IMG/VR virus record: IMGVR_UViG_3300048438_000153
Coordinates: 124,001-188,000 of that record
Strand: one strand, 5' to 3'
DNA: 64,000 nucleotides
The notes beneath the pieces are model-generated. The model was given only the letters and a program-made list of their open reading frames with translations. It did no database searches and was not told where the DNA came from. Of the stretch, positions 37,430-64,000 are shown one piece after another (the first letter of the stretch is position 1; each line of letters starts with the position of its first letter). A program made the position numbers and the translations under genes.

Positions 37430-38013
37430 CTTTTATCTACTCCACCGTCAACGCTGGGAAGTCTGCTAACCTACTTATGAGAGCCCATTCCTGTTCAGAA
37501 AGAGGAATGAAGTTCCTTATCCTCGCACCTGACATAACAGAGAGCAGAGATGGAGTTGGTCAGGTTGCATCCCGAATCGGGTTCAAGCACGAAGCAGTAC
37601 CTCTTTCTAAGAATTGCGACCCTCTTGAGATCGTCTTCAGGAAGCAACTGAAACAATCTACCACATATGACGTGATCTTCATTGATGAGTCTCAGTTCTT
37701 AACGAGAGAACAGGTAATGCAAGTCACTCGAATCACGGACAATCTGAGTATCCCTGTGTTCGCCTATGGACTTAGGACAGATTTCATGGGAAACCCGTTT
37801 GAGGGCGCTAGTTTCTTAATGGCTTGGTCAGACAAGATTGAGGAGATCGCTACCTTCGCTGTGGGCGGAGAGAAAGCCATCTTCAATCAGAAAGTGGGCG
37901 TAAACGGAGAGCGCGTCACTGAAGGTGAAGTGGTAGACGTGGGCTTCCACTACCTCCCTGTGACGCGCTCAGAGTTTGACCTCCAATCATATTGGAAGTC
38001 AGACCTCTCTTAG
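37423..38013 (+). CDS. tdk: Thymidine kinase
   Basis: YSTVNAGKS, ASRIG, IDESQFL, YGLRTDF..PFEGA. Confidence 0.93.
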   Translation: MLTFIYSTVNAGKSANLLMRAHSCSERGMKFLILAPDITESRDGVGQVASRIGFKHEAVPLSKNCDPLEIVFRKQLKQSTTYDVIFIDESQFLTREQVMQVTRITDNLSIPVFAYGLRTDFMGNPFEGASFLMAWSDKIEEIATFAVGGEKAIFNQKVGVNGERVTEGEVVDVGFHYLPVTRSEFDLQSYWKSDLS

Positions 38014-41000
38014 ATTGAGCTACGGACGTTGAACGTAAACTGAATGTAGAGGAGAGGGAAGATCGGCTTGTAGTAAACCTCTACAAGCAACCCAGTTGGG
38101 TCTTCAGGATCGCGGTCAACAGAAAGACCTGTGTAAGAGTCAATAATCTGCTCTTTCACGAGATCCTTAAACATCATGTTCACGCGACCCTCCACTTGAC
38201 CAACAACGCTAGGGAGGTACTTCTCGCCAATGTAACCATTAAGAAGGTTACGAGCGCGGAGGTGAACCTCATCTGCGATCTGAACTACCGTAGGAGTCTT
38301 AGAAAGAATAGAAGTTCCGTCAGTGGTAAGACCCTGACGCACGTTCAAGACTGCGCCCTGTTGCTGAAGAATCGTCACACCTGATGAAGCAGCCTTATTG
38401 GCGTCAACCGCATCAAGATTTCTCAAGAGCCCATTGAAGCCAACCACTGTGCGGTTCGTCCAAGGCGTAGCTACGTCGATGTTCGCTGAGGTAGTTACGA
38501 AAGCCAACGCAACTGCGAGGTAACGACCATCTACAATCACATTCTGAGACACGCCGTTGGTGTCCGTGAGAGTGAGGCTCACGATGTCAGGATAGATCAA
38601 GCGAACTCGACTATTTCTGACGTTCCTCGCGAGAGTAGATGCTTGCTCAGGTGAAGTCCCTGCGGGAACACCCAAGATCGCTGTGCGCTCAGAGCGGAAT
38701 CTCAAGCTAGACTGAACATCACAGTGAACTGAGATGTCAGAAAGAAGCTCAGAAGAAGCTGGAATGAGAGGCACGATCACAGATGGAGAAACACCTACAG
38801 CGATCTCTCCCTCAACCTCGATGAGCGCCTGACTCATCTGAGCGACAGAAGGCTCAGCTTGACCCTCTTCAAGAGGGATCTGCTTGAGAGCGATGGTCTG
38901 CGCTCCGTTTAAGAAAGCAATGTACGCACCGAGAGAAAGTGGGTTGTCTACAGCAACAGGCCCGTAAGCAGAAACCACGTCAGAAAGACGATTGAAGATG
39001 CCTGTGTTGTAAACAGTCTTTCTGCGAGTCACATCCATGAAGTACGGAGTGCCGATAGAAGGCTCTTTACCATCCTTAAGATATGTCTCGATGATCGCTG
39101 TGTCTCCAACCTCTGTACCCACCGTGTTTGACACGATGAGGCTCACGCCTGTAATCGCGCTCACAGGGATGTTAGCGTTCGCCCTGATTGCACGAGAAAC
39201 CTTGAAGCTCAGAGTTGAGTTGACGCCTGTAGGATAAGGCTGAGCGCCCACTCTAGGGAGAAGCGTGAAAGAGAAGCCTGTCACTGCGTCAACGTAAGTC
39301 TGACCGATCACGCCGTCTGCACCTGTTCCGTCATTAAGAACTGAGGTGTTCGCAGACCCCGATCCTGATGCGTTTGTAGAGGTTACGAAGAAGCCCTGAT
39401 AAGCGTTCTCACCTACTTCGCCGTCACCTGAAACAACACCCAATCTCGTGGTGTGCCTGAGAAAAGCTGTAGCACTGCCGAAAGAAAGGATTGAAGAGAT
39501 GCCTGTAGTAAGAGACTCGAAAGCAACGAAGCTCTCACCGATAGCGTTCTTCTCGATGTAAGAAATACCCTGAGATCCGAAGCCGCCTACGGGAAGAACA
39601 CTCGTCATCACCGCGCCTACGCTCGCTGAGCTGTGTTGCATGACCGCAGAAGAAAGAGCGGTTGCTGAAACGAGAGTCGCCACTTCAGTCTGATCCCCAA
39701 ACAAGCCGAGAAGATCATTAGCAGTACCCTCTAAGACTCTGATGTAGTCATCCTCAGTGTTGCCTGTAGCGACAATCCTGAGTCGATCACCTTCAATGAC
39801 GACAGAGCCGAGAGCGCCGAGCGCAGTGTTAATCTGAGCCCATGCGGTACCAGCATCCGTCAAGCCGTCCTTGAACAAGTCTGTGTCAGTACCCGCGCCT
39901 GATGCTGAGAAAGTAACAGAGACAGTCTCACCTGATATATCGAGGTTAAGCGTATTATTCTGAGCGAACAGAGCATTCGTTCCGTCATAGAAAGTAATCT
40001 CAGGACTACCGTTCACAGCAGACTGAGCATTCCTACCTACTCTTAAGAGGAGAGAAGGACTCTCGACCACTGAACTACGCGCAGAAAGAACTTCTTCAAG
40101 CTCAAGACCTGACTCCGCCAACAGTGATCCGCCTGTTACCTCAAGACCAAGCTGAACAGGTGCAGTATAGTTTGCACCGACACGAGTTCTGTTTCTGAGG
40201 ACGAGCCTATCCTTGAGCGCGTTAGAGTCAGCAGAAAGGTCGGTAGAAACGAAGCTCGCTACAGGGAGAATACCGAACTTAGTCTGAGCACCGCCAACGC
40301 CCGTGTCTGTGTCGATACCTGAGATCAGAGCAAAGTCGGTGTCGTCTCCTGTAGAAAGGAACTCGATGTAACCGCTCGTATCTCCCGCCTCAAGACCGTC
40401 AAGAGTAAAGACGAGGAAACCATCTTCTACAGATACGTTGAGGTCAACCGCCCCATTGAAGTTAGCAAGATCGTCAATCTGAGTCTCTATCTCTGTCGCC
40501 ACATCACTTGCGTTGTCGTAAGCCTGAGCTGTGAGAGTGAGGTCATGCTGAGTCGCACCGTTAGCATCACCTACATAGTTAACTCTAAGGACGTTGTGCC
40601 TACCTGATGAGAGATCAACCGCGCCCATTGTGACCATTGAGTAGTATTTAGCGCCAACAGCGTTGAACGCAGTGTTGATCGCTAAAGCGAAGTCCGTTGC
40701 AGTGGCGTTAGCAACAGCGAGGAGGTTCACAGAAACGTCCACGTTGTCGATCTTTAAGAAGATGTCACCGCTGATCGCGTCATTACCCAAGTCAGCGTTG
40801 TCAGTCTCAGGTACATATGGGAGAGGGTTGCCCACATGATAAGTGAAGAGACTTGACCCTTGAGTGGAAGGCGAGCTGAGGTTGATTGTGTTCTCACCGT
40901 TGCTATCTACTGTAATCTTAAATTCGTCTGAGTTGCCCGAAATGAACGCGAAAGGCGCTGGGTTCGGAGCGACGAAGATAGAGGGAGTCGGATCGAAACT

Positions 41001-42809
41001 TCCGATCTGAACAGAAACGGTTTCTTCAACTGCCCTACCTGAACCGAGAGTCGCATCAGAGAGCGTCTCACTACCTGAAGGGAAGTTAAGACTGATGAGA
41101 GAGAGGTCAGAACCCTTACCCTCGAAAGAAACGCCGTAGAGAGGCAATCCTGAGCGCGAGAGGCTGTATGTACCGACGTTTGACCCACCGATAGAAGCCA
41201 CTGTGACCTCATAGCCACCGCCTGCAATCTCAAACTCATCTTGGATGTTGTTGTAGTAGAAAGTAGCAAACACTTTTTGACCGAAAGGAACAGTCTCGCT
41301 GAGGGTGACTGTTGAGTCGGTGGGGTTAACTCTTACAACGTCTACAGGATCGTTTTCGAGCGCGTCTGAAATATTAGACCCAATGCGAACGATGACCTTT
41401 GTCGTGTTGCTTGTAGGAGTCCCCATCCCAGTACCGTCAGTAGGCTGATGAGGGAGCTTGAACACGTTCGGGAGAACGCGAGGAGGCACGACTGAGGTGT
41501 CAGAAACAGGAGTACACTCTGCTAAGAATATTCTCTCGTCTTTGAGGGTCGCAGTGATCTGATTTCTACCGAAAGAAACCTGACCGTTCTGAGTCGTACC
41601 CTCAGAGACAGATGCGAAAGTACCCCAATAAATCTTGTCGTCCTTGAGCACCCAACTGACACCCTCAATGAAGATCGAGTCTGCGCCACCGCCTTCAGGG
41701 ATGAGAGACACTCGATTGACTGAGGTCACGTCCCTTGAAGGGATATAGTCGAAGTTGTCACGGAAAGAGTTGAAGAAGTAAGAAATAGCTACTGTCTGAC
41801 CGACTCTAGGAGGCTGTGCGAGCGTTACCGCGCCTGTCGCGGGATCAAGTGATACAGGGATCACAGGCGCGCCGTCTACAGTTAATGTGACGTCGCTCAC
41901 CTCAGAGGTAGTAATACCACCGTTAGTGCCGTCTACAATCGGAGCTTGGTCGGTGAAGAAAGTAGCGTTTCTAGCTGATCCGCGCTGACCCTCGAAAAGA
42001 CCGACGACCTCATTTGCTGAGCCTGTCCCTACGAGGATAGACCCATCAGCAACGAGCTTAAGATTCGTCGATCCCTTGTGGTCAACGTATGAGCTCGCAA
42101 CGAGAGTTCCGATGCTAGATGCGTTGATCTTTCCGAGGATCGCGTTGAGGTGATTCTCGCGAGTGGTGTTCTGAGGCTTAAGAGGAAGCTCAACCACACT
42201 CGCTGTTCCGTCAACGGTAATGATCAGAGTTCGTGTATTAACACCAACCTCCATAGATCCTGACGCGCCGAAGATATCTGATGTCTCAGCAGAGACTTGA
42301 TCAGTAATATCTTCTGAATCCACGAAGGTATCAGTACGGTTAAAGAAATATGAAATACGAACGTCATCGCCCTCATTAGGGGCTTCAGAAAGAGTCACAA
42401 GACCATCTGCGCCCTTGATCGCGAGCACCACTACAGGAGAGCCGTTGATCGTAGCAGAAACAGATCCCGCTGACGTCGCTGTTGAGCCTGAGCCGTCTCC
42501 TGTGACGATAGGCCAATGGAGGGTTCTCACTACGTTAGTCTGACCGTCGAAAGCACCTAAGTTATAAGTGCCGTTCGGGTTCTGAGAAAGAGCAACGCGA
42601 CCTGACGCATCCTCCTCAACTATTTCCTGATCAACGGTAGCACTCGACCCTCGAACGAGAGTGATCCCATTCTGAGCAAAAGTCTCAGTACCCGATCCGA
42701 TAAGAAGGGGGAGTCTCCCCGAAAAGTTACTCTGAGGAGTAGGAGACTCAAATACTGTCTCCGTATATACTCCGGGTGGTGCGTATCCGCCACGAATAGC
42801 CATAGTCAT
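38010..42809 (-). CDS. Tail sheath protein, very large with inserted domains
   Basis: N-terminal YAPPGVYTE; C-terminal sheath core (SERTAILG, RVRLIYPD, VRQGLTT, VYYKPIFPLLYIQFTF). Confidence 0.88.
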   Translation of the reverse strand: MTMAIRGGYAPPGVYTETVFESPTPQSNFSGRLPLLIGSGTETFAQNGITLVRGSSATVDQEIVEEDASGRVALSQNPNGTYNLGAFDGQTNVVRTLHWPIVTGDGSGSTATSAGSVSATINGSPVVVLAIKGADGLVTLSEAPNEGDDVRISYFFNRTDTFVDSEDITDQVSAETSDIFGASGSMEVGVNTRTLIITVDGTASVVELPLKPQNTTRENHLNAILGKINASSIGTLVASSYVDHKGSTNLKLVADGSILVGTGSANEVVGLFEGQRGSARNATFFTDQAPIVDGTNGGITTSEVSDVTLTVDGAPVIPVSLDPATGAVTLAQPPRVGQTVAISYFFNSFRDNFDYIPSRDVTSVNRVSLIPEGGGADSIFIEGVSWVLKDDKIYWGTFASVSEGTTQNGQVSFGRNQITATLKDERIFLAECTPVSDTSVVPPRVLPNVFKLPHQPTDGTGMGTPTSNTTKVIVRIGSNISDALENDPVDVVRVNPTDSTVTLSETVPFGQKVFATFYYNNIQDEFEIAGGGYEVTVASIGGSNVGTYSLSRSGLPLYGVSFEGKGSDLSLISLNFPSGSETLSDATLGSGRAVEETVSVQIGSFDPTPSIFVAPNPAPFAFISGNSDEFKITVDSNGENTINLSSPSTQGSSLFTYHVGNPLPYVPETDNADLGNDAISGDIFLKIDNVDVSVNLLAVANATATDFALAINTAFNAVGAKYYSMVTMGAVDLSSGRHNVLRVNYVGDANGATQHDLTLTAQAYDNASDVATEIETQIDDLANFNGAVDLNVSVEDGFLVFTLDGLEAGDTSGYIEFLSTGDDTDFALISGIDTDTGVGGAQTKFGILPVASFVSTDLSADSNALKDRLVLRNRTRVGANYTAPVQLGLEVTGGSLLAESGLELEEVLSARSSVVESPSLLLRVGRNAQSAVNGSPEITFYDGTNALFAQNNTLNLDISGETVSVTFSASGAGTDTDLFKDGLTDAGTAWAQINTALGALGSVVIEGDRLRIVATGNTEDDYIRVLEGTANDLLGLFGDQTEVATLVSATALSSAVMQHSSASVGAVMTSVLPVGGFGSQGISYIEKNAIGESFVAFESLTTGISSILSFGSATAFLRHTTRLGVVSGDGEVGENAYQGFFVTSTNASGSGSANTSVLNDGTGADGVIGQTYVDAVTGFSFTLLPRVGAQPYPTGVNSTLSFKVSRAIRANANIPVSAITGVSLIVSNTVGTEVGDTAIIETYLKDGKEPSIGTPYFMDVTRRKTVYNTGIFNRLSDVVSAYGPVAVDNPLSLGAYIAFLNGAQTIALKQIPLEEGQAEPSVAQMSQALIEVEGEIAVGVSPSVIVPLIPASSELLSDISVHCDVQSSLRFRSERTAILGVPAGTSPEQASTLARNVRNSRVRLIYPDIVSLTLTDTNGVSQNVIVDGRYLAVALAFVTTSANIDVATPWTNRTVVGFNGLLRNLDAVDANKAASSGVTILQQQGAVLNVRQGLTTDGTSILSKTPTVVQIADEVHLRARNLLNGYIGEKYLPSVVGQVEGRVNMMFKDLVKEQIIDSYTGLSVDRDPEDPTGLLVEVYYKPIFPLLYIQFTFNVRSSI

Positions 42810-45736: not shown

Positions 45737-47383
45737 TCATACGACTTGATCCAAGAGATGAGTGACCACCGCGCTCTTGATGTACTTGAAGCTCTTGGGT
45801 GTTAAGACTCCGCCGATCTCAAAGTACGTTTTAGATCTTTTCAGAGCCTCCATGAAATGATCTCTAATCGACTCTTTAGAAAGACCGTAGTTCTTTCTCA
45901 GATACTCTTCGGACTCAGACGCAATCTGCTGTAGAAAAGCCTTAACCTCTGAGCTGTGGTTCACATACCTCCGAGCCTCAGCTACTGACTTATTCTTTCT
46001 CCCGTATCCCTCCATATTCTTATGGTAAAGAATCTTGTCGTAGGCATGAGTCACCTCATGCTCAAGGATACCTAAGAACTCTCTTTTGAATTTAGCCTCG
46101 AAGTTTGAATATTTACGAGTCAAAGGGTGTGTCAGGTTCGCGGGGTAGTCCTTTATCCGAATGATGATGTGATGGTCATTAAAGATATATAGCCCACTAC
46201 CTTCTCTATCTTTATCAATCTCAGCAGTGACATAGACACTCTCTTCACCGACACTAAGTTTGCCTACTAGAAAGTGAGGAAACCTAGAAGCCTCAGAGAT
46301 ATAAGACACACCCTTCTCTGTAGCTTTCTCGGCGCGTTTCTCAATCTGACCCCAAGCTTGGTCTGTAAGCTCTCTTAAAGGGCGCTTATCTATACGGATG
46401 GGGCGAGCCGCCGATTTGTCTTTGATCAAGTCCTTGCCCTCTTCAGAGAACGTCGGTGTGAGAACAGGCTTCTGACCCTCACTCTTAGCCTCCTCACTCC
46501 TCTTCTTGCGCGCCAACGTAGCCCTCTGTTCTTTCGTGAGATCGTGGGCTTTGTCTCTCGGCATACACTTGAGTGGGTTCTTTCCTCCATCCGTGACGCT
46601 TCTCCAACTCGGCTCACTAGAGATGGCACATGGGCCAACAATGTCTCCTGCCTCATAAGTCTTAGACTCCCCGTTTTCTTTCTCTACGGTGTGTTTGATC
46701 GGAGTGATCGCGATCCAATCACCCCATGTAGCTCGCTCATCGGGCTTACCCCCACCATGACCCGCAAACCAAGTGGAAAGACCGCCATGACCTGTATTCT
46801 TAAGTTTGGGGCCATCTCTCTGTGCTGATCGTAGATATCGGGAAGCTACCCTATATGGACTACTAGACCCTTTTTTGACCCCATAGCAGTTCTTATATGG
46901 TCTACAAGACGCTTTCTCTGAGAAGCCCATCTCGCCACAGATCTTGGACTCACAGTGCTCTTTATCCCACTTACGAGGCTTCTTGTACGAAGTATCTTTC
47001 CCCGAAGAGTTCTTTCTCAGAGAAGGGTTTCTGAGCATGGTATCTCTTGTCCTGAAATCTTTGTTCCTACCCTTGTTAGGCTTGAACCCAAATCTCCTAT
47101 AAAACTTAGTCAAACGAGACACGGAGCTCGCGCCGAAGTCTGTTGAAGGAGAAAGAGATAACATAACACCATGATCATCAGCCCAAGAGATAATCTGAGA
47201 CATGACCTCTGAACCCAAACCTTGCTTTCGATTTTCTGAGGGGATCTGAACTGTCATGATCCTGACGATAGGGGCGTGATATTCATCCCCGCTCGATAGG
47301 AAAGAAGTCCATAAAACAAGACCCTGATATCGTCTCTCTAAGTTATCTTCTAGTGTCTTTAGCGACTGCTCTAAAATAGACAT
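45737..47383 (-). CDS. Multi-module protein: GNAT-like + small Cys domain + basic domain + zincin
   Basis: RKQGLGS...LTKFYRRFGF (GNAT); RVASRYLRSA and KSA linkers; ILEHEVTHAYD...YVNHSSEVKAF. Confidence 0.7.
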   Translation of the reverse strand: MSILEQSLKTLEDNLERRYQGLVLWTSFLSSGDEYHAPIVRIMTVQIPSENRKQGLGSEVMSQIISWADDHGVMLSLSPSTDFGASSVSRLTKFYRRFGFKPNKGRNKDFRTRDTMLRNPSLRKNSSGKDTSYKKPRKWDKEHCESKICGEMGFSEKASCRPYKNCYGVKKGSSSPYRVASRYLRSAQRDGPKLKNTGHGGLSTWFAGHGGGKPDERATWGDWIAITPIKHTVEKENGESKTYEAGDIVGPCAISSEPSWRSVTDGGKNPLKCMPRDKAHDLTKEQRATLARKKRSEEAKSEGQKPVLTPTFSEEGKDLIKDKSAARPIRIDKRPLRELTDQAWGQIEKRAEKATEKGVSYISEASRFPHFLVGKLSVGEESVYVTAEIDKDREGSGLYIFNDHHIIIRIKDYPANLTHPLTRKYSNFEAKFKREFLGILEHEVTHAYDKILYHKNMEGYGRKNKSVAEARRYVNHSSEVKAFLQQIASESEEYLRKNYGLSKESIRDHFMEALKRSKTYFEIGGVLTPKSFKYIKSAVVTHLLDQVV

Positions 47384-47384
47384 A

Positions 47385-48515
47385 TTACACGACCTCATTC
47401 ACGAAGATGCCCACCGCTTTCTTCCAATTTCTAGGCTTGTACCTTTTAAGAGATTGAAAGAACTTCCTGTGGTTTAAGTAGCTTCTAATGTCACTGTTCT
47501 TAGGCTGAGGATTTCTCTCCCTAAAGTTAGTCACCTCATCTAAGAGACGAGAATAAAACTCAATGTCGTCGAGCGCATGGATCGAAATGAGACTAGGATC
47601 AAGACCCTCAGATCTGTACTGATTTCTGAGGGTCTTTTCTTTCTCCCTGTCGTGTTGCCGAAAAGTTCTGTCTCTACTTGAGGTAGGTAAACCCGCTTCA
47701 GAAACTCCCGCATTTAAAGCCATCTGTCTCTGAAAAGCATGGACAAGCTCATGTCGGGCAAAGTCCTCAATCTCTCTCAGCTCTTCCACACCTAAGTTTC
47801 TTTCCTCTGAGAACATGACCACGCCTATAATATGCTTTTTCTCTCTAGAAAGAGAAATCGAATCTTGACTCGGATCATAGAGCTTATAGTAAGCAGGACT
47901 CTTTTCAGAACTCTTAGACCCCTGTTCTACTTTCCCTACTAATGTGAGATCTCCAAGCTCCTCTGTATGAAGTACATTAGTCTTAATAGAATCCTGAATC
48001 TTGGCAAGTCTCTCATATAAAGGTCTTGCCGAAGCAGATATGAAAGGAGTCCGACCCTTGTAAAGACTCTTAAGGTCGGACATCAGACTGAAAAAGTCCC
48101 CCTCTAAATCACCAACGGAGCGCCTAAAATCTCTAGGGCTGTCCGAATAGCTTAAAGACTTCAGATCACGGATCTTCGCCTTCACCCTGTTAAGAGAAGA
48201 TGGCTGTTTCAAGCCCCCTCTCCAAGACGATGTGAGCTCATCAAGAAAAAGCTCGGCGCGATCTAACAGCCTGATGTAGCGAACACCATTATCTCTCCTA
48301 AGCGAGTCAGAAGCGTCTTCTAAATCCTCAAAAGACTCGTTTAGGTCTGATATCAGATCCTTATTTAAGAAAGAACTCTCTTCTAGGAGATTCTGCTTGT
48401 TGACCCAATAGCTCGCAAACTTAGCCTGAAGCCTTTCAGTAACTTCTTCTACGAGGTGTCTTGGAGGTCTTATCAAGCCCGCACTTTTAGGTTCAGATGC
48501 TCTTACTCTCATCAC
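47385..48515 (-). CDS. Zincin-like metalloprotease-domain protein
   Basis: KSA-GLIRPP start; RHELVH; HALDDIEFYSRL. Confidence 0.75.
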   Translation of the reverse strand: MMRVRASEPKSAGLIRPPRHLVEEVTERLQAKFASYWVNKQNLLEESSFLNKDLISDLNESFEDLEDASDSLRRDNGVRYIRLLDRAELFLDELTSSWRGGLKQPSSLNRVKAKIRDLKSLSYSDSPRDFRRSVGDLEGDFFSLMSDLKSLYKGRTPFISASARPLYERLAKIQDSIKTNVLHTEELGDLTLVGKVEQGSKSSEKSPAYYKLYDPSQDSISLSREKKHIIGVVMFSEERNLGVEELREIEDFARHELVHAFQRQMALNAGVSEAGLPTSSRDRTFRQHDREKEKTLRNQYRSEGLDPSLISIHALDDIEFYSRLLDEVTNFRERNPQPKNSDIRSYLNHRKFFQSLKRYKPRNWKKAVGIFVNEVV

Positions 48516-48750
48516 ACAACCTCATCCACGAAGATGCCCACCGCTTTCTTCCAATTTCTAGGCTTGTACCTTTTAAGAGATTGAAAGAACTGACTGCGGT
48601 CTAGGTGAGCGCGTATATCCCTGTTCTTAGGCTGAGGATTTCTCTTCCTAAAGTTAGTCACCTCATCTAAGAGACGGGAATAAAACTCAATATCATCGAG
48701 CGCATGAACAGAAATAAGACGAGGGTCTAGACCCTCAGATCTGTACTGAT
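47387..48750. repeat. ~237-bp near-identical 3' ends of adjacent zincin genes (47387-47623 and 48514-48750)
   Basis: Long identical blocks at offset 1127. Confidence 0.88.
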
Positions 48751-50512
48751 CCCTCATTGACTTCAGTAGCTCTTTCTTATCTTCAACATCATCCGAGTCA
48801 AAGATGTTAGGTTGCCTGAAAGTCTTGTCATATCTTGAGCGTGGGAGCCCTGTATCTCTGTATTCTCTAGGAGAAACATTCGGCTTACTTAAGTGGCGCT
48901 GAATAGCGATTTCTTTCTGCATGAGGTGAACTAACTCATGTCTCGCCACATCCTCTATCTTATCAAGCTCAAAAGCCCCCCAAGTGGTCTTCCCTGAATC
49001 GAAATAGAAAGTGATGATGTGTGCCGTATTACCGAAACCATAAGACCCTCCCGCCCTAAGAGGACTCTTAAACTCTACATTCACATAGAGAGGGTGAGAA
49101 AGAGATGGATCACTCAATCGCCACGAGTAGCCCGACCTTGAAACCTTACGTCTGTGTGAGTTCTTCTGAAAAGCCTCTTCGTACTTCTCTTTCGCGTAAG
49201 GATTGATCAGGCTCATGCCTGAGCCATTCGCGCCCTCAAAAAGATCTCTGAACAAGTCTGAAAGAGTCCTGATATCCTCTTTGTACAAGCTCACTTTTTC
49301 TAAGAGGTCTTGAGGGTTGAGCCTAGAAATGATCTCGTGCGCGTCTATGATCTTAGAGAGATCATCGCTGTCTGTAACTTTCCCACTGAGAGTGTTCAAG
49401 TAGTTCTTTCCGCTCTTGAGTTGGAAAGAAACATCGCTCAGAGACTCCTCACCTCTCTTAATACCTTTCGGAAGATAGGCGAAATCATCAGCAAAAGCCT
49501 CAAGGATGTCTAGGTCGTCTGAGCTGTAGGGGCTACTGTTTCTAGCTTCCATATCGAGTAGATACTCAGCGAGCGCGCCCTTAGCAATCTCGGTCAGCTC
49601 TTTGACGAGGTGTTGAGGTGGTCTAATCAACCCTGCTTTTCTTAAAGCAGATCCGTTGTTCGCGAATCCACTGTCGTAAGGGATAACACGCGCAGAACCG
49701 CTACCGCTGTCATGGACGTATCCCAAGTCGAGTCGGTTGGCGGGAGTCCTCCCGTTAGCCTCAGACTTATCGAGATTTCGGTACTTCAGATTGGGTGAAT
49801 CAGGGGAAGGTCTACCTATGTTTCTTGCCGAGTCTCCATTGGGGAGCGCGCTGTGTGCGTCCGTTCCATCGGGATTGTCTGAACGACCGATGGGAGTACC
49901 TTGTGTCAGGCTTGAGAGCTGATCAGGTGGAGTGACTTCTCTATAGAAATCAGCCCTTCTTTCTAGCGAAGCAGTCTTACCTGTGTCTGCGATATGGTTG
50001 AGCCAAACACTCTCTAGGTCTGTGTTGAAGACAGAAATCTCTATGGGCTTAGAATAGCGCCATGTGGAGACAGTCGTTTTCTGCTCTGTAGTCCACTGAG
50101 AGTTCCCCCAACCAGGTTCTTGAGAATAGGTAGTCTCTACTTGATAGAAAGCGTTCCCTTTGAAAGTGACCTTTGGAGATCGGGAGTAGAAATCGACCTC
50201 AAGCTCTCCCGCTAGACCGATAATCTGAGGATCGACTTTAGACGAGGTGAGTCTATCGGCGATCCTCTTCATTTCTGTCGTGCTTACATTGAAAGGGGAT
50301 ACTGCGTAAGACCAAGGTACGTTACCATTCTTATTAAACCACGCAGACGTGAGAGACTTGATCTCACTCTCTACTTCGGCGTACCTGTTGAACGTAGAAA
50401 TGTTGCTGAGAAGAGCGGTCTTGACGGCTTCCCTGAGATCAGGGTTATCGTGCTTAACAGTTACCGAAATATCATTAGGACTTGAGTACCAATCAGATGA
50501 CGTTCTTCTCAT
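48512..50512 (-). CDS. Multi-module protein with C-terminal zincin domain
   Basis: Starts MRRTS; linkers RYA, KTAS, RRA; RKA-GLIRPP, then RHELVH and HALDDIEFYSRL. Confidence 0.75.
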   Translation of the reverse strand: MRRTSSDWYSSPNDISVTVKHDNPDLREAVKTALLSNISTFNRYAEVESEIKSLTSAWFNKNGNVPWSYAVSPFNVSTTEMKRIADRLTSSKVDPQIIGLAGELEVDFYSRSPKVTFKGNAFYQVETTYSQEPGWGNSQWTTEQKTTVSTWRYSKPIEISVFNTDLESVWLNHIADTGKTASLERRADFYREVTPPDQLSSLTQGTPIGRSDNPDGTDAHSALPNGDSARNIGRPSPDSPNLKYRNLDKSEANGRTPANRLDLGYVHDSGSGSARVIPYDSGFANNGSALRKAGLIRPPQHLVKELTEIAKGALAEYLLDMEARNSSPYSSDDLDILEAFADDFAYLPKGIKRGEESLSDVSFQLKSGKNYLNTLSGKVTDSDDLSKIIDAHEIISRLNPQDLLEKVSLYKEDIRTLSDLFRDLFEGANGSGMSLINPYAKEKYEEAFQKNSHRRKVSRSGYSWRLSDPSLSHPLYVNVEFKSPLRAGGSYGFGNTAHIITFYFDSGKTTWGAFELDKIEDVARHELVHLMQKEIAIQRHLSKPNVSPREYRDTGLPRSRYDKTFRQPNIFDSDDVEDKKELLKSMRDQYRSEGLDPRLISVHALDDIEFYSRLLDEVTNFRKRNPQPKNRDIRAHLDRSQFFQSLKRYKPRNWKKAVGIFVDEVV

Positions 50513-50526
50513 GAGGTAGCTCTTTC

Positions 50527-52077
50527 TTAGTTAGAGAGACAAGCTCTAATATCAGCGAGCGCGTAGTGACTCCGAGGAACTTGGAGGAGCTGAAGAAGCT
50601 GAGGTCGATACTTAGGGTTCTCGTAAGCGAGCTTAACGACAGCAGTCTTAGCTACAAAGGCGTCCTCTCCAAGCTCGTCCTTAACTACTTCTACTTCTCT
50701 CTTAGCTTCCTCTCCCTTTTCTTTCTTAGCCTCAGAAACAGCTTTATCAAGGTTCTTCTTAACCTCAGCGTGGAAAGCCTCAGTCTGCTTTTTCATATCG
50801 GCCTGAAATGCTTTTAAGTCAAAGCCGTTCGGAGTGACAAACTGAGAAAGGTAGTCAATCTGATCAGCATCAATTGTTGAATAATACTCAATGATTTTCT
50901 GCTTGAGAGATTCAATGTCCTCTTCAGAAGCACTCTTAAACCAGCTCTTTAAACCTGACACACCTTTACTGCCCTTCCCCACTCCTTTCTGAGTTAAACC
51001 TCCAATACCCTCAGCGATACCTTTAACTCCTTTTAAAGCGATTGCACTAACACCCGCAACGGAGGTTACAGCCATTGCGACTGCTTGTGCTCCAGCCACC
51101 GCACCTCCTGCTGAAAGTCCGACTGCACTTCCAAATGCTTCTATGCCCATATCAGCAAAACTTGAGCTCGCTTCTGAAGCACCCTCAGCTTGAGCGTCAT
51201 TAAGACCATTCTTCTTAAAAATGGAATGATGGGCTTTTTTTATCTTATTTCGACTCTCTTCCCCCCACTTACCAATCGCCTTTAATTTTGTTTGTAACTC
51301 TTCAGCACTCTCAGGAATAGATTCGGTGAGAGTTTTTCCCGCTTGACTAAGAGTATTACTACCCTTTTCATCTAGCTTACTCGCCTCCTCAAGAGCCATA
51401 TCTATCGCGATACCTACGTCTTGAGAGCTGTCGAGAACTAACTGTCTCTTCACTTCAGCAGAAATCTCTGAAGCTAACTGAGCTCCGCCCTCTTTAAGAG
51501 CAGACACAGCTTTCTCCTCACCCTCAGTCAGTTGCTTTTGCTTGTTCCACTTTTCTGCAAGATCTGCGATAGCTTTCTTAGCTTGTTCATGGAGACTAGA
51601 TGCCTCATCAAGCGCATAACCTATTGCAGTAGAAACGGCTAGTGATCCCTCCATAGCCTCAGAGATTTCGACCCTTTGGTTTTGCAAAGACCTCTCAAAC
51701 TCAGATTGACTCTCAATAGGTACACCTATCGCAGTCTCTAGTTTAGACTTCTTTTTGTCTTTTTTGTTCTTGTTGTCTTTCTTATTCTTGTCGTCCTTCT
51801 TATTGCGCTTATCCGCTCTGTTCTGTTTTCTCTTCTCTCCCTTGTTACCCCTATTCTTAGTCTTCTTCGCCTTAGACCTACCTGCCTCTTTAAAGATGTC
51901 TCCCGTGAAGAAAGGAAGCACATAATCCCTGATCTCAGGGTTCGCATAAGCGAGCTTGATGACCCTCGAAATAAGATCTTCTTCTGAAGCTGTCCTGAGA
52001 GAGATCAGAGGGAGGATATCGCCTCTAGTTTCCTCGTTTTCGTAAGCAGTACGGATCAAGTATTCTCTAATGTTCAT
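50527..52077 (-). CDS. Protein with three xAY(E/A)N motifs and a Gly/Ala-rich hydrophobic segment, putative head/ejection protein
   Basis: LIRTAYENEETR, VIKLAYANPEIR, VVKLAYENPKYR; AVGLSAGGAVAGAQAVAMAVTSVAGVSAIAL. Confidence 0.65.
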   Translation of the reverse strand: MNIREYLIRTAYENEETRGDILPLISLRTASEEDLISRVIKLAYANPEIRDYVLPFFTGDIFKEAGRSKAKKTKNRGNKGEKRKQNRADKRNKKDDKNKKDNKNKKDKKKSKLETAIGVPIESQSEFERSLQNQRVEISEAMEGSLAVSTAIGYALDEASSLHEQAKKAIADLAEKWNKQKQLTEGEEKAVSALKEGGAQLASEISAEVKRQLVLDSSQDVGIAIDMALEEASKLDEKGSNTLSQAGKTLTESIPESAEELQTKLKAIGKWGEESRNKIKKAHHSIFKKNGLNDAQAEGASEASSSFADMGIEAFGSAVGLSAGGAVAGAQAVAMAVTSVAGVSAIALKGVKGIAEGIGGLTQKGVGKGSKGVSGLKSWFKSASEEDIESLKQKIIEYYSTIDADQIDYLSQFVTPNGFDLKAFQADMKKQTEAFHAEVKKNLDKAVSEAKKEKGEEAKREVEVVKDELGEDAFVAKTAVVKLAYENPKYRPQLLQLLQVPRSHYALADIRACLSN

Positions 52078-52136
52078 TGGGTTTGCCCTTTCTAAGCGCA
52101 AGTTTCTTTTCTTAACTTAACGACGAGATAAAAAAA

Positions 52137-54785
52137 TTACTCAACCCTCTGTCTGAGGAGATAAAGGTTAGTCTCGTGAGCGTTCGCCATAGACATAATA
52201 AAGTCGTCCATCCCTAGAGTGAGAACGTCCATTTCTTTCAGCGCCTTATAGATATTCTTGAAGGCTACCTGTAGAGCTTCCTCCACAATCAGAGCGCGGA
52301 GAATAGGGTTGTCTTCAGCCTGAACCTCAGCGATAGGGAGAATCGTGTTCGCCATCAACTGTGCCTGATCTACAGGAGAGACAGCTCGACCTCCGTATGT
52401 ACCCACGATCTTCTCAGCGAGCGTGTCGATCTCTTCGATAAGACTTTGGTAAATCCTCTCTAGTAAGAGATGATCTCCATACTGACTCTCACCCTTCACT
52501 TGCCAATGACTCGTCCAATGAGCCCAATGCGCGCCCCTCAATATGGCGAGCAGAACTTGGAGCGTAGAGAGGGCCATGTCTTTCTCAGAGGCTTTCTTTC
52601 TCCAACCCCCACCTAGCTCTTTGTAAGACTTACTAGCCCAACCGTTCGCATAGGCGCTAGGGTACTTCCTAAAGCCTTCTCCGCCACGAACAGGATTGAT
52701 AATCTTATCACCCCTAGAAACAGGGTTCTTTCTATCGCCTTTAGCGAGGTCTATAATCTCGCCCCACAGCTTAGGGTCAGTAGGCATATTCTCAGCCCCC
52801 CTCTCTATGAAGTTAATGTGCTGAAAAGAGTCCACAGGGATTTGACGATACATCCTAGAAAGAATAGACCTCACGGCCTCTCTCTGCATCGCTTTCTTTC
52901 TTAGTTGCACTTTTCTCGATTTTTGGTTCTTCTGAGTCACGGTCGAACTCCCCCCACCTTCTAGGCGTTTATATCTTTTAGGGTTGTCTCTTCTCCTCTT
53001 ACCTGAAAGGAGAAGCTTGGTCTTATTTCGGAGGTAGTACCTCTTGTTGTCTCTCTTCATCTGACCACGATCTCTACGTTTTTTCTTAACATAGTCGATC
53101 TTGTTCTTTCTGTTGAGAGTCCCCTTAGTATCTCTTTGCTTTCTTCTAGGTGGGCGCAAAGTGATCTTAGCTCTCCCCCGATGCTTCGGGTCAGCTATTC
53201 TTTCTTCTTGAGCCATCTTAGGTCTGCGAGCTAAGCCTGTGGTTTTATTAGCGTCCACATAGGGGTGTCCATATTGATCTCCAGGTATGCCTGAGCTTCT
53301 AGGGCGTTGATGAAGAGGCTTACCATCAGGCTGATTAGGTAGTGCGTTCGGATTCGGTGCTTTCCCGTAGTTAAGAGAAGCTCCTGAGCTGTCTGAAGGC
53401 GTGTTGGAAACAGGAGGCCCTGATCGGTACTCGTCACGCCCTTTCGGATGACCGCTAGGAAGGGGCAGAACTCTATCTCTTTGCGACTTACCATCCTCAT
53501 AGTCTTGACGGCTAGGTTCGGGGGCAGAGGTGTCGTTATCGAGTCCGTCTTGACGACTCTTGCTAACCCAAGTCTGAACGCCCGCTAAGTCCTGTATAAG
53601 TTGCCTAGCAACACGGGTGTTAGAGTCCTCCGTGACAGCCTGATAGAACAAGCCAACAGCTTTGTCCCAAGACTTTCTCTTAAAGTGCTTGAGAGCCCTA
53701 AAGAAAGGACTACTGTTGATGTGTCTACGAACGGTGGAGTTGTTTTTTCTGAGAATGGGATTTCTGAAGTAGCGAGATCTGAACTCCTCAACCTCGTCTA
53801 AGAGTCTCGTATAAAACTCAACGTCATCAAGGGCATGGAAGTTAGCTAAGTTAGGGTCTAAGCCTAAGTCCTTGAGCTCCTGACGCACTTGACGCTCTTT
53901 TGACTTATTATGCTGAGTGATCTTAGTGTCTCTTCTCTTAAAGGGTAAGCCCCCTCTATCTGACAAGCCCTCTCTCTGCCCTATTTCTGACTGAACCGCG
54001 TGGACTAACTCATGCCTAACAGTGCCCTTCACCTGAGCCAAGTCATCTCGGCTGTAATCGGTCTTCTCAGGGATCATAATCTTGATGTGGTGAGCGGAGT
54101 TCCGAAAGCTGTGCGTACCGAGTACGTTTGAATCCATAAACTTAAAAGACAGGACTATGGGATAAACAAATTCAGGGTGAGTGATTCTCGCCTCCACACC
54201 CAAGTCTATGTGGGTGTGGGAGGTCTTAAGATACTCTCGGGGAAACCGACTTTGAGCGAGCTCAAACATATCCTTATCTTGATAAGGATATGACTCTTTC
54301 TTTTCCTTCAGATTTTTAGACACATATAGAAGGCATAAAGAGAGCTTCATAACATCTATCTTGTTATCCCTAAGAACCTTGAGCGACTTATCTGAATTTG
54401 AAAGAGTTTCGAGGTCATTCCAACTAAGAATCTTCTCAAAGAGAGTAAGTGCAAGGTTAGCGTCGTCTCTTATGTTCTTATTTTTATAAGTGTTTTTCTT
54501 AGTGTCTGCGATGACTATTCGGAGTACGTCATGATAGTCATGAAGGAGATCTTCGAGAAGCTCGAATAGCTCTTCCATGTCTTCGTTTTCAAAGTCTTTA
54601 AGATACTCCGAAATCTCTTTCGCCATGCCTTCAAGGTCTTCGATCTCCTCTTCGCTCACTATAGAACTAAAAATTTTAGTGAGAACGTGATCAGCTAACA
54701 CACCCTGAGCTATTTCAGCCACTATTCTAAAAAGCTCGGGAGGAGGCTTCATTAAGCCTGCTTCTTTGTCTGAGAACCTTGCCAT
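52137..54785 (-). CDS. Multi-module protein: zincin + basic modules + Dps/ferritin-like domain
   Basis: KEA-GLMKPP, RHELVH, HALDDVEFYTRL; C-terminal HWQVKG...DHLLLERIY....EIDTLAEKI. Confidence 0.78.
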   Translation of the reverse strand: MARFSDKEAGLMKPPPELFRIVAEIAQGVLADHVLTKIFSSIVSEEEIEDLEGMAKEISEYLKDFENEDMEELFELLEDLLHDYHDVLRIVIADTKKNTYKNKNIRDDANLALTLFEKILSWNDLETLSNSDKSLKVLRDNKIDVMKLSLCLLYVSKNLKEKKESYPYQDKDMFELAQSRFPREYLKTSHTHIDLGVEARITHPEFVYPIVLSFKFMDSNVLGTHSFRNSAHHIKIMIPEKTDYSRDDLAQVKGTVRHELVHAVQSEIGQREGLSDRGGLPFKRRDTKITQHNKSKERQVRQELKDLGLDPNLANFHALDDVEFYTRLLDEVEEFRSRYFRNPILRKNNSTVRRHINSSPFFRALKHFKRKSWDKAVGLFYQAVTEDSNTRVARQLIQDLAGVQTWVSKSRQDGLDNDTSAPEPSRQDYEDGKSQRDRVLPLPSGHPKGRDEYRSGPPVSNTPSDSSGASLNYGKAPNPNALPNQPDGKPLHQRPRSSGIPGDQYGHPYVDANKTTGLARRPKMAQEERIADPKHRGRAKITLRPPRRKQRDTKGTLNRKNKIDYVKKKRRDRGQMKRDNKRYYLRNKTKLLLSGKRRRDNPKRYKRLEGGGSSTVTQKNQKSRKVQLRKKAMQREAVRSILSRMYRQIPVDSFQHINFIERGAENMPTDPKLWGEIIDLAKGDRKNPVSRGDKIINPVRGGEGFRKYPSAYANGWASKSYKELGGGWRKKASEKDMALSTLQVLLAILRGAHWAHWTSHWQVKGESQYGDHLLLERIYQSLIEEIDTLAEKIVGTYGGRAVSPVDQAQLMANTILPIAEVQAEDNPILRALIVEEALQVAFKNIYKALKEMDVLTLGMDDFIMSMANAHETNLYLLRQRVE

Positions 54786-54829: not shown

Positions 54830-55396
54830 TTAAGAAAGAAACTCGCTTACACCTTCAGGAGTAACTACGACGTAAGACCCGAAGTTCTGCACAAACCCCT
54901 CTCTCTCGTACTCCAAGAGAGCGCGGAAGTAGTTACTTGGTAACTCTCCTCTAGTGATGACAACCTCACCATCATCAATCATCTTTTCTGAGATGATGTC
55001 AGCGATCTCCTGAAAGAAAGCACCCGAAGCGCCCGCCACCCTAACCTCAGAGTTAATATTCCTCGCCGCTTCGGGGGCGGGGTTATACTTAGAGGCGATG
55101 TCTACAGTCTCACGATCACTGTGAGGGAGGCGTTGACGGTAGAAATCAGCACCCATCGTGATGAGAGCGTAGTTAGTCTTATCTAGGTGTCTCTCGATCT
55201 TAGCGAGGGTGTCGGGGATCGTGAGAAAGGTATCTCCACAGAGACGGTAGACTTCTTCGATAGCGGGCGAGTCTTGAAGCGCCTTAACCATCTGATCTAC
55301 TGCTATTCTTAGACGGTAAGCCTCAACCCTTGCGTCAGAGACGCCACCCGCCAAAATTGACCAAGATGCTTGGCTCGATGCTTTCTTATCTCTCAT
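54830..55396 (-). CDS. Linker-motif protein, putative head cargo
   Basis: Starts MRDKKAS; internal RVA-G linker. Confidence 0.65.
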   Translation of the reverse strand: MRDKKASSQASWSILAGGVSDARVEAYRLRIAVDQMVKALQDSPAIEEVYRLCGDTFLTIPDTLAKIERHLDKTNYALITMGADFYRQRLPHSDRETVDIASKYNPAPEAARNINSEVRVAGASGAFFQEIADIISEKMIDDGEVVITRGELPSNYFRALLEYEREGFVQNFGSYVVVTPEGVSEFLS

Positions 55397-58993: not shown

Positions 58994-59872
58994 TTAGCGA
59001 GTAACGGTGAGGCGAGCAAGACCGCGTGGGTTGTACGCGCCGATACCCAAATTCTCAAAGACTGAGAAACCGATGGTGCGAGCCTTCGGATCGTCAGCAG
59101 AAAGAACAGTAAGCTCAGTACGGACAGGGATGCGTCCGAACATCTCAGGCTCACAGCAGACGTACACAGTGCCGACAGGAACTAGACGGCTAGTGATGAT
59201 CTGTGCGCCCCAAAGAGTAGCCTGAAGACCAGTCTTAAGGAGCGCTGCTTGGCTCTCGATGTCGAGAATGTCGCGACCAAACTTACGGATGTCAGCGTAG
59301 TCACGAGCGTTCATGAAGACGCGAGAGACACGGAGGTCGTGACGCTCGATAAGAGCGTATGCGTCAGCGAGAACAGCACCGTTAAGAGGAGCGATGACAG
59401 GAATGTCAGCGTTAGTCTGACCAGGGAGACTGTCGAAGCCTTGAGTCGCAACCGCGTCGAGGATAGCGAATACACGCTCGTCCTCAGCCGCCTGAATCTG
59501 AGCGCGAGCCAAGTCTTGAGCCCTCTCGATCAGATCGAAGCGACGCTCCTTGATCTGAGTGAGTGGGATCTCAGGGTTTGATGCGATCTCGAAAAGAGGG
59601 AAGATCACACGACGTGGCTTGGTGATAGCGAGGATGTTCTCGCCCTCTTCACCTACCACGAACGCGGTCACGTCAGGGTCTTTGTCGTAGATCGGAAGCG
59701 CACCATCAGGAAGTTGCTCTACGAGGAAAGTCTTACGACCAACGCTCGTATAGTCACGACGGAGACGGAGAGGTTGTGTCATTGAAGCGGCTAGCTTCGC
59801 ACGACCTTGTGGGGTCTTAATGTAGTCAGCAATGATCTTTTGCTTTACTGCGTTATCGACGTTGTTACTCAT
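58994..59872 (-). CDS. Major capsid protein (HK97 fold)
   Basis: 292 aa; order protease-scaffold-decoration-MCP followed by a terminator; IQAAEDERVFAILD spine helix, VFMNARDYADI, LWGAQIITS. Confidence 0.82.
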   Translation of the reverse strand: MSNNVDNAVKQKIIADYIKTPQGRAKLAASMTQPLRLRRDYTSVGRKTFLVEQLPDGALPIYDKDPDVTAFVVGEEGENILAITKPRRVIFPLFEIASNPEIPLTQIKERRFDLIERAQDLARAQIQAAEDERVFAILDAVATQGFDSLPGQTNADIPVIAPLNGAVLADAYALIERHDLRVSRVFMNARDYADIRKFGRDILDIESQAALLKTGLQATLWGAQIITSRLVPVGTVYVCCEPEMFGRIPVRTELTVLSADDPKARTIGFSVFENLGIGAYNPRGLARLTVTR

Positions 59873-62649: not shown

Positions 62650-62674
62650 AGGATTTCCTTTCTGCATGAAGGGC

Positions 62675-64000
62675 TTACCGCCCATGAACGAATGTGATAA
62701 GCTTGGAAAGTCTTACCAAGCGAAGTGAGTCTTTGCGAGTTAACTTTGAACCATGACACTCCTCAGCGTCAGAGATAAAGCTAGCCACTTTATTATACCT
62801 GTCTGCTGAGTCTATTTGACTAGCAATACGGTACAGGTAAGAAGGTAGGTAGACGTCGAAACGATCATTGACGAGTCTGATGTTATCGACTGCCTCTTTC
62901 TTAGAGGAGGCGATCTTCACAGCGGTGTCAAGAGCTGAGAAATAGAGATTCTTTCTCTTTATCTTTCTCTTACTCTTGCCCTCTTTAATGATTGTATCGT
63001 CAGCGGTAGTAGGGTCGCCTGTTGCGGGTACATTAACCGCTTTCTGAGCGAGCTCCTCTTTGATCTCCTTTTCGAGCTTCTTTCTCATGCGACCAACGAG
63101 AGCTTCAGTCACTACGCCCTCAAGTTGATCGAGAATAGAATCAGGAGTCTCTTCTTTCTTAGTGGATTCACCCTCTTCATCGCCCTCGCCATCTCCGAAG
63201 TCGAAAGGACCTGCGAGATGGGATGAAGCAGACTTGCTCAACCACTGCGGAGGAACTTGATTAAGTTTTTCCTCTTGTGGGTTGGCGTCAGCGGAAGGGA
63301 TTTCAAGAGTATTCCTAGCGACCGCGCCCTTAAAGGCAGGTATGGCAACCCAAGAAGCCTCAATGAAGGTTACGCCACCTGTTTCCCCCGTAGTCTCATG
63401 ACCACAAAGCTCGGCAACACGGTGCTTGTTTCCATTCTCATCGAAGAAAACATTACCCTTCTCATACTTAACGTGTCGGCACATCTGAGGCTCATCAGCC
63501 GCGACGTGACCGCACTTGGTGCAGATGGTGAAATCGACAGAACAACCCATCGACATACCGTTCATTTCACCCGATAAGATTTGTCTAACGAGATCTTCGT
63601 GCTTTCTATCTGTGGCTACAAGAATATCCACATAGATAGATTCACCAATATCTCGCATAACAGCATCAATGATACGCCCTTTAGAGAGCTCTTCAACTTG
63701 AACGTGTTCAACAAAGTTATGCGCCCCCACAAACGTCTTATAAGACTTCTTAATAACGCCCCTAGACCAACAGTCGAGGTTGTTATTGATGTACTTATCT
63801 GTCTCGGAGGTGACTCGATAGTCTGCATACTTTCTGTTAATATTCTGACCCTCTTCCTCAACTGAACCTGTCTTTACATTAGGGACAGAAACAGCGTCTA
63901 CGGAGCACACAATCGTAGAGTGTGTGAGTAGAAACCGATCAGGAGTGAAGGGCTCGCCTAAAAGCTCTTCTGCTTTCTTCTTAAGGCTCGAATCGAGGCG
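62675..64000 (-). CDS. Prohead maturation protease (HK97/assemblin-type, with Zn-binding insert), 5' end outside window
   Basis: Frame open to 64000; FVEH...GRIIDA, GMSMG, CxxC..C.H insert, FIEASWVAIPA. Confidence 0.8.
   Translation of the reverse strand, partial: RLDSSLKKKAEELLGEPFTPDRFLLTHSTIVCSVDAVSVPNVKTGSVEEEGQNINRKYADYRVTSETDKYINNNLDCWSRGVIKKSYKTFVGAHNFVEHVQVEELSKGRIIDAVMRDIGESIYVDILVATDRKHEDLVRQILSGEMNGMSMGCSVDFTICTKCGHVAADEPQMCRHVKYEKGNVFFDENGNKHRVAELCGHETTGETGGVTFIEASWVAIPAFKGAVARNTLEIPSADANPQEEKLNQVPPQWLSKSASSHLAGPFDFGDGEGDEEGESTKKEETPDSILDQLEGVVTEALVGRMRKKLEKEIKEELAQKAVNVPATGDPTTADDTIIKEGKSKRKIKRKNLYFSALDTAVKIASSKKEAVDNIRLVNDRFDVYLPSYLYRIASQIDSADRYNKVASFISDAEECHGSKLTRKDSLRLVRLSKLITFVHGR

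Follow-up and report, generated by a model that had tools for sequence, protein, structure and literature searches.

Analysis of a 64,000-nucleotide window (bases 124,001 to 188,000 of the 275,102-bp IMG/VR virus record IMGVR_UViG_3300048438_000153, with a completeness estimate of 88%) showed that the source, a marine jumbo phage, carries a family of five zincin-like modules, encoded by late head-cluster genes at positions 45737 to 54785 and by one distant open reading frame (ORF) starting at 10853. On balance, the proteins are probably modular cargo of the polyvalent type, packaged in the head and injected, with a previously unclassified gluzincin-like metallopeptidase domain. The zincin family itself is new and unannotated, and the kind of phage weapon is one already recognised. 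Positions are those of the window, and the features are listed in Table 1.

The original prediction had placed zincin-like modules in the ORFs starting at 10853, 45737, 47385, 48512 and 52137, each with an HExxH-type motif and a conserved downstream Glu. All of the quoted motifs were present on the minus strand, the downstream elements read there being HALDDIEFY, HALDDVEFY, HSLAEIEYD and NHSSEV, and the family profile matched exactly those five ORFs. Homologs were collected by a word-seeded search (13 sequences) and then by profile at E <= 1e-3 (565 cluster representatives). From an aligned set of 55 diverse catalytic domains (A5) a hidden Markov model (HMM) was built; run over every one of the 676 ORFs in the genome, it matched 48512 (7e-62), 47385 (8e-61), 52137 (3e-60), 10853 (4e-14) and 45737 (3.5e-5), and the sixth-ranked ORF had an E-value of 0.22. 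The match to the 10853 ORF came in two pieces (residues 153-214 and 236-315), and hhalign also aligned its C-terminal part. Pairwise phmmer searches joined just 47385, 48512 and 52137 (E 1e-30 to 1e-58) and gave no link of the 10853 or 45737 ORFs to these three; both were kept as members because the deeper profile and hhalign link them. Module A (47385-type) and module B (45737-type, a small family of its own) were aligned by hhalign at 92% probability and E = 5e-7, pairing sheet with sheet, HExxH with HExxH, and the Glu of DDIEF with the Glu of SSEVK. The A5 profile search and the A/B profile alignment thus indicate that the five-member family and its conserved downstream Glu are real. Judged from sequence comparison, the five ORFs belong to a single divergent family, in which subtypes A and B and one distant copy can be told apart.

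The downstream Glu was invariant in all 55 sequences of A5, as were H86, E87, H90, Q93, G106, F151 and A198 (the Glu itself being E150), while P108, H144, L146, D148 and Y152 were nearly invariant. The invariants of module B in the A4 alignment were H, E, H, N and E. A fold search with the whole 376-aa model from AlphaFold2 (AF2) was dominated by a four-helix bundle and taught nothing on the catalytic part, so the catalytic domain was folded alone. In the resulting model (predicted local distance difference test, pLDDT, 91.7; predicted template modelling score, pTM, 0.87), four strands (residues 8-15, 19-29, 39-44 and 58-65) precede helix 74-100, which carries HExxH and is followed by a conserved loop-and-helix segment and by helix 148-165, starting at E150. 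The modelled catalytic domain has the gluzincin layout of sheet, HExxH helix and Glu helix. Structure prediction and Foldseek had been proposed earlier as a check; the prediction gave this layout, and Foldseek gave no significant match to a solved zincin (E > 0.1). The named weak matches that spanned the domain were mostly zincins, namely the ChlB HExxH domain, 3e11, M3 peptidases, lugdulysin, lethal factor and SPRTN, with CapP, SprT, M78, DUF4932, eCIS core and PhageMetallopep as further ones. The best zincin matches in VIA had Z-scores of 4.1-4.9, and template modelling (TM) scores in Atlas were weak to M3, SprT, M78 and PhageMetallopep (0.34-0.46) and reached 0.53-0.59 with unnamed viral clusters only. 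The best match over the whole domain was the HExxH domain of ChlB, an alpha-ketoglutarate-dependent oxygenase (Z 4.9, TM 0.34). A language-model search returned ATLF, SprT-like and polyvalent-protein-associated domain as leads only. The family profile had no match in a sequence-profile search of the PDB. Similarity to SprT-like proteins was below threshold throughout (best E 0.003-0.012); the cut-off of Pfam PF10263 was not reached by the 10853 ORF (17.9 bits vs 25.6), and 3 of the 55 members matched this model, with a best E of 0.012.

Sharply defined starts of the form GL[IM][RK]PP had also been predicted for three modules, and they were found as described: GLIRPP after KSA where the module stands alone (376-aa protein), GLIRPP after RKA where it is C-terminal (residue 294 of the 666-aa protein), and GLMKPP after KEA where it is N-terminal (residue 10 of the 882-aa protein). 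Among 33 distinct homolog contexts, position -3 was K or R in 30 and position -1 was A or S in 31, with a relative entropy of 2.7 bits at each of these positions compared with 0.6-1.3 bits elsewhere in the leader. The constraint was independent of the upstream sequence, be it a leader of 4-12 residues, another domain or a preceding zincin module. Residues 1-12 of the full-length 376-aa AF2 model had no structure (pLDDT < 50); where a sequence is constrained but unfolded, a linear motif is a better fit than a folded cap. The start of module B, ARPIRI, came after KSA, KKA or KTS, and K-x-[AS] also stood ahead of SSQASW in the unrelated 188-aa neighbour and its orthologs (leaders of 4-16 residues). 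The junction reads [KR]-x-[AS] followed by G, A or S, and the Glu-ending cleavage motif of T4 or phiKZ type (L/I-x-E or A/S/G-x-E) was not found there. In the uncultured phage LR745208.1, whose head region is syntenic, the protein that corresponds to the 882-aa one has retained the M-A-x-x-x-DKEA leader and then runs straight into the post-module linker; it lacks the block right after KEA, which shows the module to be an exact cassette that one phage has and the other does not.

A variable helical insert had been proposed between this start and the catalytic part, and the AF2 model confirmed it as a helical bundle: the 376-aa model has a helix at residues 19-46, then a four-helix bundle (about residues 47-157; nucleotides about 47991-48377), then the catalytic domain. 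Identity between paralogs was 35-45% in the helix following the start, 15-18% in the four-helix bundle, 9-26% (nearly unrecognisable) in the sheet, and 54-85% in the C-terminal 65 residues. The short homologs P0010, P0011 and P0017 were without the four-helix bundle. At the 3' ends of the 376-aa and 666-aa genes (47385-47625 and 48512-48752), the last 240 nt were about 88% identical and 47 of 56 identical residues had the same codon, while the rest of the modules was about 15% identical in protein. This identity in DNA and codons points to recent gene conversion or recombination of the ends.

A scan of IMG/VR for the module yielded 32 loci. In most of the placeable ones the module gene was a few kilobases from a capsid, protease or portal gene, and module genes were beside the gene for the major capsid protein (MCP), portal or protease in L011, L013-L018, L020-L027 and L037-L038. 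The number of modules per locus ranged from one to four among phages with 94-98% identical MCPs, and the modules were ordered A-B, B-A or in tandem (A-A). The module was N-terminal in 1,038- and 991-aa proteins, C-terminal in 969-, 983-, 835- and 804-aa proteins, stand-alone in a 350-aa form, and present twice in a 3,032-aa protein directly after the portal gene, and some orthologs of the 48512 and 52137 proteins had no module at all. The architectures, too, varied among phages with 94-98% identical MCPs. This gain and loss is cassette-like. Distant members were found in 2,740-3,381-aa proteins with topoisomerase IB and CCA/polyA-polymerase (PolyA_pol) nucleotidyltransferase domains, and in a 2,904-aa protein with a 2H phosphoesterase domain. 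The layout is therefore polyvalent, a zincin being joined to unrelated effector-type domains both here (GNAT with zincin B, zincin A with a Dps-like domain) and in the distant homologs (Topo IB, PolyA_pol, 2H). No module was found with the A5 profile in LR745208.1, Tunturi_5 or phage G, where the search filter means that absence is not proven. Variable copy number, shuffled module order and the diverged insert and sheet suggest an arms-race pattern.

The head-gene block runs on the minus strand in the order large terminase, portal, 1,146-aa protein, prohead protease, scaffold-like acidic protein with Met/Ala/Glu repeats, 202-aa protein and MCP. These are followed by several small genes, the 343-aa and 188-aa proteins and the five genes of 45737-54785, and then by a glutamine-synthetase-like gene, two small genes and the 1,599-aa sheath-type protein. 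The MCP was 88.6% identical to that of LR745208.1 (485 kb), 47% to that of Tunturiibacter phage Tunturi_5 and 38% to gp27 of Bacillus phage G. Genes of the cargo cluster overlap by 4 and 14 nt or are otherwise separated by gaps of 14-81 nt. A promoter and terminator scan found no intergenic terminator-like site inside the cargo cluster, the sole convincing one being after the capsid gene, and promoter-like sites were rarer than in shuffled controls. A read-through or frameshift polyprotein over 48512, 47385 and 45737 was considered and set aside, as the genes have proper start codons and their overlaps of 4 and 14 nt resemble ordinary translational coupling.

Table 1. Features of the zincin gene cluster and of the surrounding head-gene block (positions in the window)
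Feature	Position	Strand	Evidence or remarks
318-aa distant fifth member, outside cluster	10853..11809	-	HELIH 11177-11191; HSLAEIEYD 11075-11101
1,599-aa tail-sheath-type protein, closes block	38010..42809	-	Pfam Phage_sheath_1C, residues 1509-1596, E = 4e-4, under curated cut-off
553-aa mosaic protein	45737..47398	-	Pfam and PHROG GNAT matches; alignment A3
Zincin module B of 553-aa protein, residues 331-553	45740..46408	-	ARPIRIDK start directly after KSA; HEVTH 46046-46060; NHSSEV 45944-45961
376-aa stand-alone zincin module A	47385..48515	-	12-residue leader; GLIRPP 48462-48479; HELVH 47739-47753; HALDDIEFY 47553-47579 (Glu319)
666-aa protein	48512..50512	-	N-terminal region residues 1-293, then C-terminal zincin module A
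Zincin module A of 666-aa protein, residues 294-666	48515..49633	-	GLIRPP 49616-49633 after LRKA; HELVH 48926-48940; HALDDIEFY 48680-48706
524-aa non-zincin cluster member	50527..52101	-	Orthologs at equivalent position in relatives
882-aa mosaic protein	52137..54785	-	ORF translation; A5 HMM E = 3e-60
Dps/ferritin-like (DUF5856) domain, C-terminus of 882-aa protein	52236..52583	-	Pfam PF19174 E = 4.8e-6 (under curated cut-off)
Zincin module A of 882-aa protein, residues 10-385	53631..54758	-	GLMKPP 54741-54758; HELVH 54000-54014; HALDDVEFY 53811-53837
188-aa head-cluster neighbour, non-zincin	54830..55396	-	Ortholog leaders 4-16 residues, all ending K-x-[AS] ahead of conserved SSQASW
Major capsid protein (MCP)	58994..59872	-	HK97-type; phrog_2522 E = 3.9e-51
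Prohead maturation protease	62675..64000 (ORF extends beyond window to 64093)	-	phrog_18299 E = 1.2e-15; full ORF 472 aa

The modules had been read in the original prediction as diversified proteases, possibly injected to cut different host defence proteins, with the insert setting specificity. This reading was supported in part: there is one divergent family with a gluzincin signature, its insert is hypervariable between paralogs, and the head-cluster position here and in relatives fits virion association; injection, the cutting of host defence proteins and specificity set by the insert are proposed steps. Under this reading, the cargo proteins would be built into the prohead, trimmed at the conserved [KR]-x-[AS] junction ahead of the modules, and would exit the capsid together with the DNA. 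Most simply, trimming would be done by the prohead protease, which is favoured over the zincins because the junction, in a handful of cases, also stands ahead of non-zincin proteins and is kept in the relative where no module was found. In the host, the zincin modules may bind zinc and cut proteins, the hypervariable four-helix bundle and beta-sheet giving each paralog its own substrate, and the companion GNAT, basic linker and Dps-like domains may modify host factors or coat the incoming DNA. If this is true, a group of marine jumbo phages packs its capsids with swappable protease cassettes in a set that varies between near-identical phages, and from that set one could read which host factors a given phage has to destroy at entry.

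Among the domains of phage polyvalent proteins, zincin-like peptidases with HExxH plus a Glu on the helix that follows are the most common, and autoprocessing or effector roles have been proposed for them (PMC5512222); zincins of jumbo phages occur in variable copy number, which was read as targeting of different host proteins (PMC7824862). The modules were filed with this polyvalent, variable-zincin kind on account of a peptidase hub among unrelated domains, the portal and head position, the patchy distribution, the copy-number variation and the divergence of the parts that would face a substrate. Like the metallopeptidase domains of polyvalent proteins, they have an HExxH helix and a Glu on a later helix with variable inserts between, occur in one to several copies at N-terminal, middle or C-terminal positions among unrelated effector domains, and are encoded near portal and head genes (PMC5512222), the genes here and in relatives being beside portal, protease and MCP. 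In contrast to polyvalent proteins, the modules of this genome do not share one giant protein but are distributed over a row of adjacent, overlapping genes; they have their own N-terminal GLIRPP-plus-helix element, often with a four-helix bundle before the catalytic part, and a conserved [KR]-x-[AS] junction ahead of them, and match no curated model (PMC5512222). A further difference is that the scanned proteins showed no MuF domain (PMC5512222). The patchy distribution and the copy number differing between close relatives are shared with the SprT- and ArdC-like zincins of jumbo phages, whereas the predicted third ligand is a distant Glu here and a nearby His in SprT, to which similarity is sub-threshold (PMC7824862).

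The sole experimental parallels are the T4 internal proteins and the phiKZ-like ejection proteins, whose cleavage motifs end in Glu (PMC5694885, PMC7411985, PMC10052503). The ejection (E) proteins of phiKZ-like phages and SPN3US and the internal proteins and Alt of T4 are packaged in the capsid, cut back by the prohead protease where a short motif occurs, and ejected into the host, and short N-terminal targeting or propeptide sequences are removed from this cargo (PMC5694885, PMC7411985, PMC10052503, PMC9026906). As in those phages, paralogous protein sets are encoded with the head genes here, but the motifs there are A/S/G-x-E or L/I-x-E and here [KR]-x-[AS], and packaging and cleavage are experimentally established there and proposed here. 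No sequence relationship to the head cargo proteins of phiKZ-like phages, SPN3US or T4 was found. With gluzincins and minigluzincins (3e11, the M3 family, the catalytic domain of anthrax lethal factor), which are weak structural neighbours, the modules share sheet, HExxH helix and downstream Glu helix, but there is no sequence-level match (Z up to 5, TM < 0.5), and a conserved GLP..RQ..GLDP segment of about 55 residues between both helices is specific to the present family.

Several results weigh against packaged and injected peptidases. The evidence that would associate the proteins with the virion is their gene position, and the glutamine-synthetase-like gene within the block means that position is no guarantee of a structural role. 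The 318-aa ORF sits outside the head cluster and is without the GLIRPP start. No Pfam, NCBIfam or PHROG model matched the module at threshold, and no cultured relative carrying the family was found, a tblastn search with the module over 50,697 deposited phage records giving no match. Similarity to solved structures was weak (Foldseek E > 0.1 against the PDB, VIA Z up to 5, TM < 0.5), and that both His and the Glu meet at the predicted metal site is suggested by conservation and topology, not by geometry. The 565 metagenome cluster representatives of a family unannotated in Pfam, NCBIfam and PHROGs mean that naming it would bring annotation to many hypothetical proteins.

An equally live alternative to host targets is that the [KR]-x-[AS] junction is where the multi-domain proteins are processed, by the zincin peptidases or by the prohead protease. 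In the main rival explanation, the zincins are self-processing peptidases that cut their own and their neighbours' precursors at this junction, in the head or after ejection, with no host substrate. The same junction ahead of modules of both subtypes, tandem ones included, and the interspersion of modules between other domains suit this explanation, and in the literature autoprocessing is the foremost proposal for the peptidase domains of polyvalent proteins (PMC5512222). The junction, however, is also present in the 188-aa neighbour family and in the ortholog in LR745208.1, a phage in which no module was found, which a shared, trans-acting prohead protease explains better, and self-processing leaves unexplained both the near-complete divergence of sheet and bundle beside a constant cut site and the stand-alone modules with leaders of just 4-12 residues. 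It is considered a possible but rather unlikely account. A role in morphogenesis only, with the proteins as assembly or internal head components (scaffold-like, inner-body-like or maturation peptidases) and not host effectors, appears improbable: core morphogenetic proteins are conserved and single-copy, whereas none found to four copies occur here among phages with near-identical capsid proteins, in shuffled module order, and the fusions to GNAT, Dps-like, Topo IB and nucleotidyltransferase domains suit an effector role better, even though the genes lie between MCP and tail sheath, near a scaffold-like acidic protein and a protease, and a conserved zincin of another jumbo-phage group was proposed for maturation (PMC7824862). 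Very improbable is a non-peptidase HExxH domain, with other metal-site chemistry or a DNA-linked SprT/ArdC-style action on DNA-bound proteins only, for although the ChlB oxygenase domain was the best whole-domain match, SprT-like matches occurred below threshold and one module has a very basic linker and a DNA-binding domain of the Dps-like type as partners, every supporting match was below significance, most modules are without a DNA-binding partner, and the invariant two His, catalytic Glu and downstream Glu are the classical gluzincin peptidase set (PMC5512222).

The mosaic proteins differed in what accompanies the module. The 882-aa protein consists of a 9-residue leader (MARFSDKEA), zincin module A, a conserved linker, a very basic stretch, a DUF5872-like segment and a C-terminal Dps-like domain, which at residues 735-850 matched phrog_3636 (8.7e-9), NCBIfam Dps (3.7e-5) and also PHROG 858. 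After the zincin module and ahead of the Dps-like domain, this protein has, at 52593-53156 (ORF residues 544-731), an Arg/Lys-rich stretch that is extremely basic and a KYPSAYANGWA..GGGW segment that was seen again at the N-terminus of homolog P0004; the region suggests a DNA-coating role. The 553-aa protein consists of a GNAT acetyltransferase (about 46988-47260), a Cys-rich KWDKEHCESK..RPYKNCY element, RVASRYLRSA (46823-46852), a conserved middle and the C-terminal zincin module B. The N-terminal region of the 666-aa protein contains ADFYREV and a conserved GYVHDSGSGSARVIPYDSGF element. The 524-aa protein has an AYENPxxRxxLLP-type motif three times (two N-terminal, one C-terminal), an FKEA|G junction, a Lys-rich tract and a Gly/Ala-rich hydrophobic stretch. 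The latter (50995-51147, ORF residues 319-369) follows the Lys-rich low-complexity tract and could be the membrane-active segment of an ejection protein.

Two short peptides recurred in the genome and in relatives, much more often than chance would give. The first, R[VI]A-x-x-[YH][LM] ('RVAxRYL'), had 13 matches in the ORFs of the genome, where about 2 were expected from composition; four were at residue 6 of an ORF and one at the extreme C-terminus. Its sites in the window were 46823-46852 (residues 183-192 of the 553-aa ORF) and residue 6 of a 168-aa ORF at 57008-57514, and further ORFs of the genome with the peptide were, relative to the window, -50118..-49546, -46879..-46370, -44287..-41990 and 76591..77271. 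Among the relatives it was found in loci L010, L013, L017, L021, L022, L030, L035, L040 and L006, at N-termini, at C-termini and between both zincin modules of the 3,032-aa protein, and it was often 2-4 residues ahead of a [KR]-x-A junction. RVAxRYL is a candidate docking or targeting peptide. The second, (L)IR[LI]A[YH]xNPxxRxxLLP, was mostly N-terminal. Its three copies in the 524-aa ORF were at 52003-52050, 51907-51954 and 50584-50631, and it was also present at the N-terminus of 29846-30421, at 77376..78569 and 140770..141423 relative to the window, and at the N-terminus of 26343-27398 in L006. Orthologs of the 524-aa protein all start with it, and it was followed by LLKEA|AG in LR745208.1 and by FKEA|G in the 524-aa ORF.

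These peptides and the junction are concrete candidates for the addressing and processing of head cargo in jumbo phages. A tentative and rather doubtful extension is an address-and-cut cargo system, in which docking peptides of the RVAxRYL and AYxNP type would load a delta-domain-less HK97-type shell, cleavage at [KR]-x-[AS] would free interchangeable cassettes, and diversified zincins would be the commonest payload. Encapsulins offer a likeness, their cargo being marked by cargo-loading peptides. Such a system, if true, would also explain a capsid protein far better conserved than its neighbouring genes. The MCP, of 292 aa and without a delta domain, was 88.6% identical to that of LR745208.1, compared with 27-69% for adjoining head genes, and 94-98% identical among the IMG/VR relatives, compared with 32-82% for the cargo genes.

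Further observations concerned the remaining genes of the block. The glutamine-synthetase-like protein (44636-45655, 339 aa, Gln-synt_N and Gln-synt_C) is shorter than cellular GlnA and lies inside the structural block, a position kept in relatives at 67-71% identity. The sheath domain of the 1,599-aa protein (38010-42809) was confined to its far C-terminus, with a weak DUF2460 match near residue 300. The scaffold-like protein between the protease and capsid genes (60640-62685, 681 aa) is highly acidic with many MAED/MAEM repeats, and the HEASH it contains is not related to the zincin family. Just downstream of the capsid gene, a 183-aa ORF (58192-58743) has a signal-peptide-like N-terminus with a hydrophobic stretch ending in AHA|QE, which is shared by its orthologs in relatives and is unusual for head genes.

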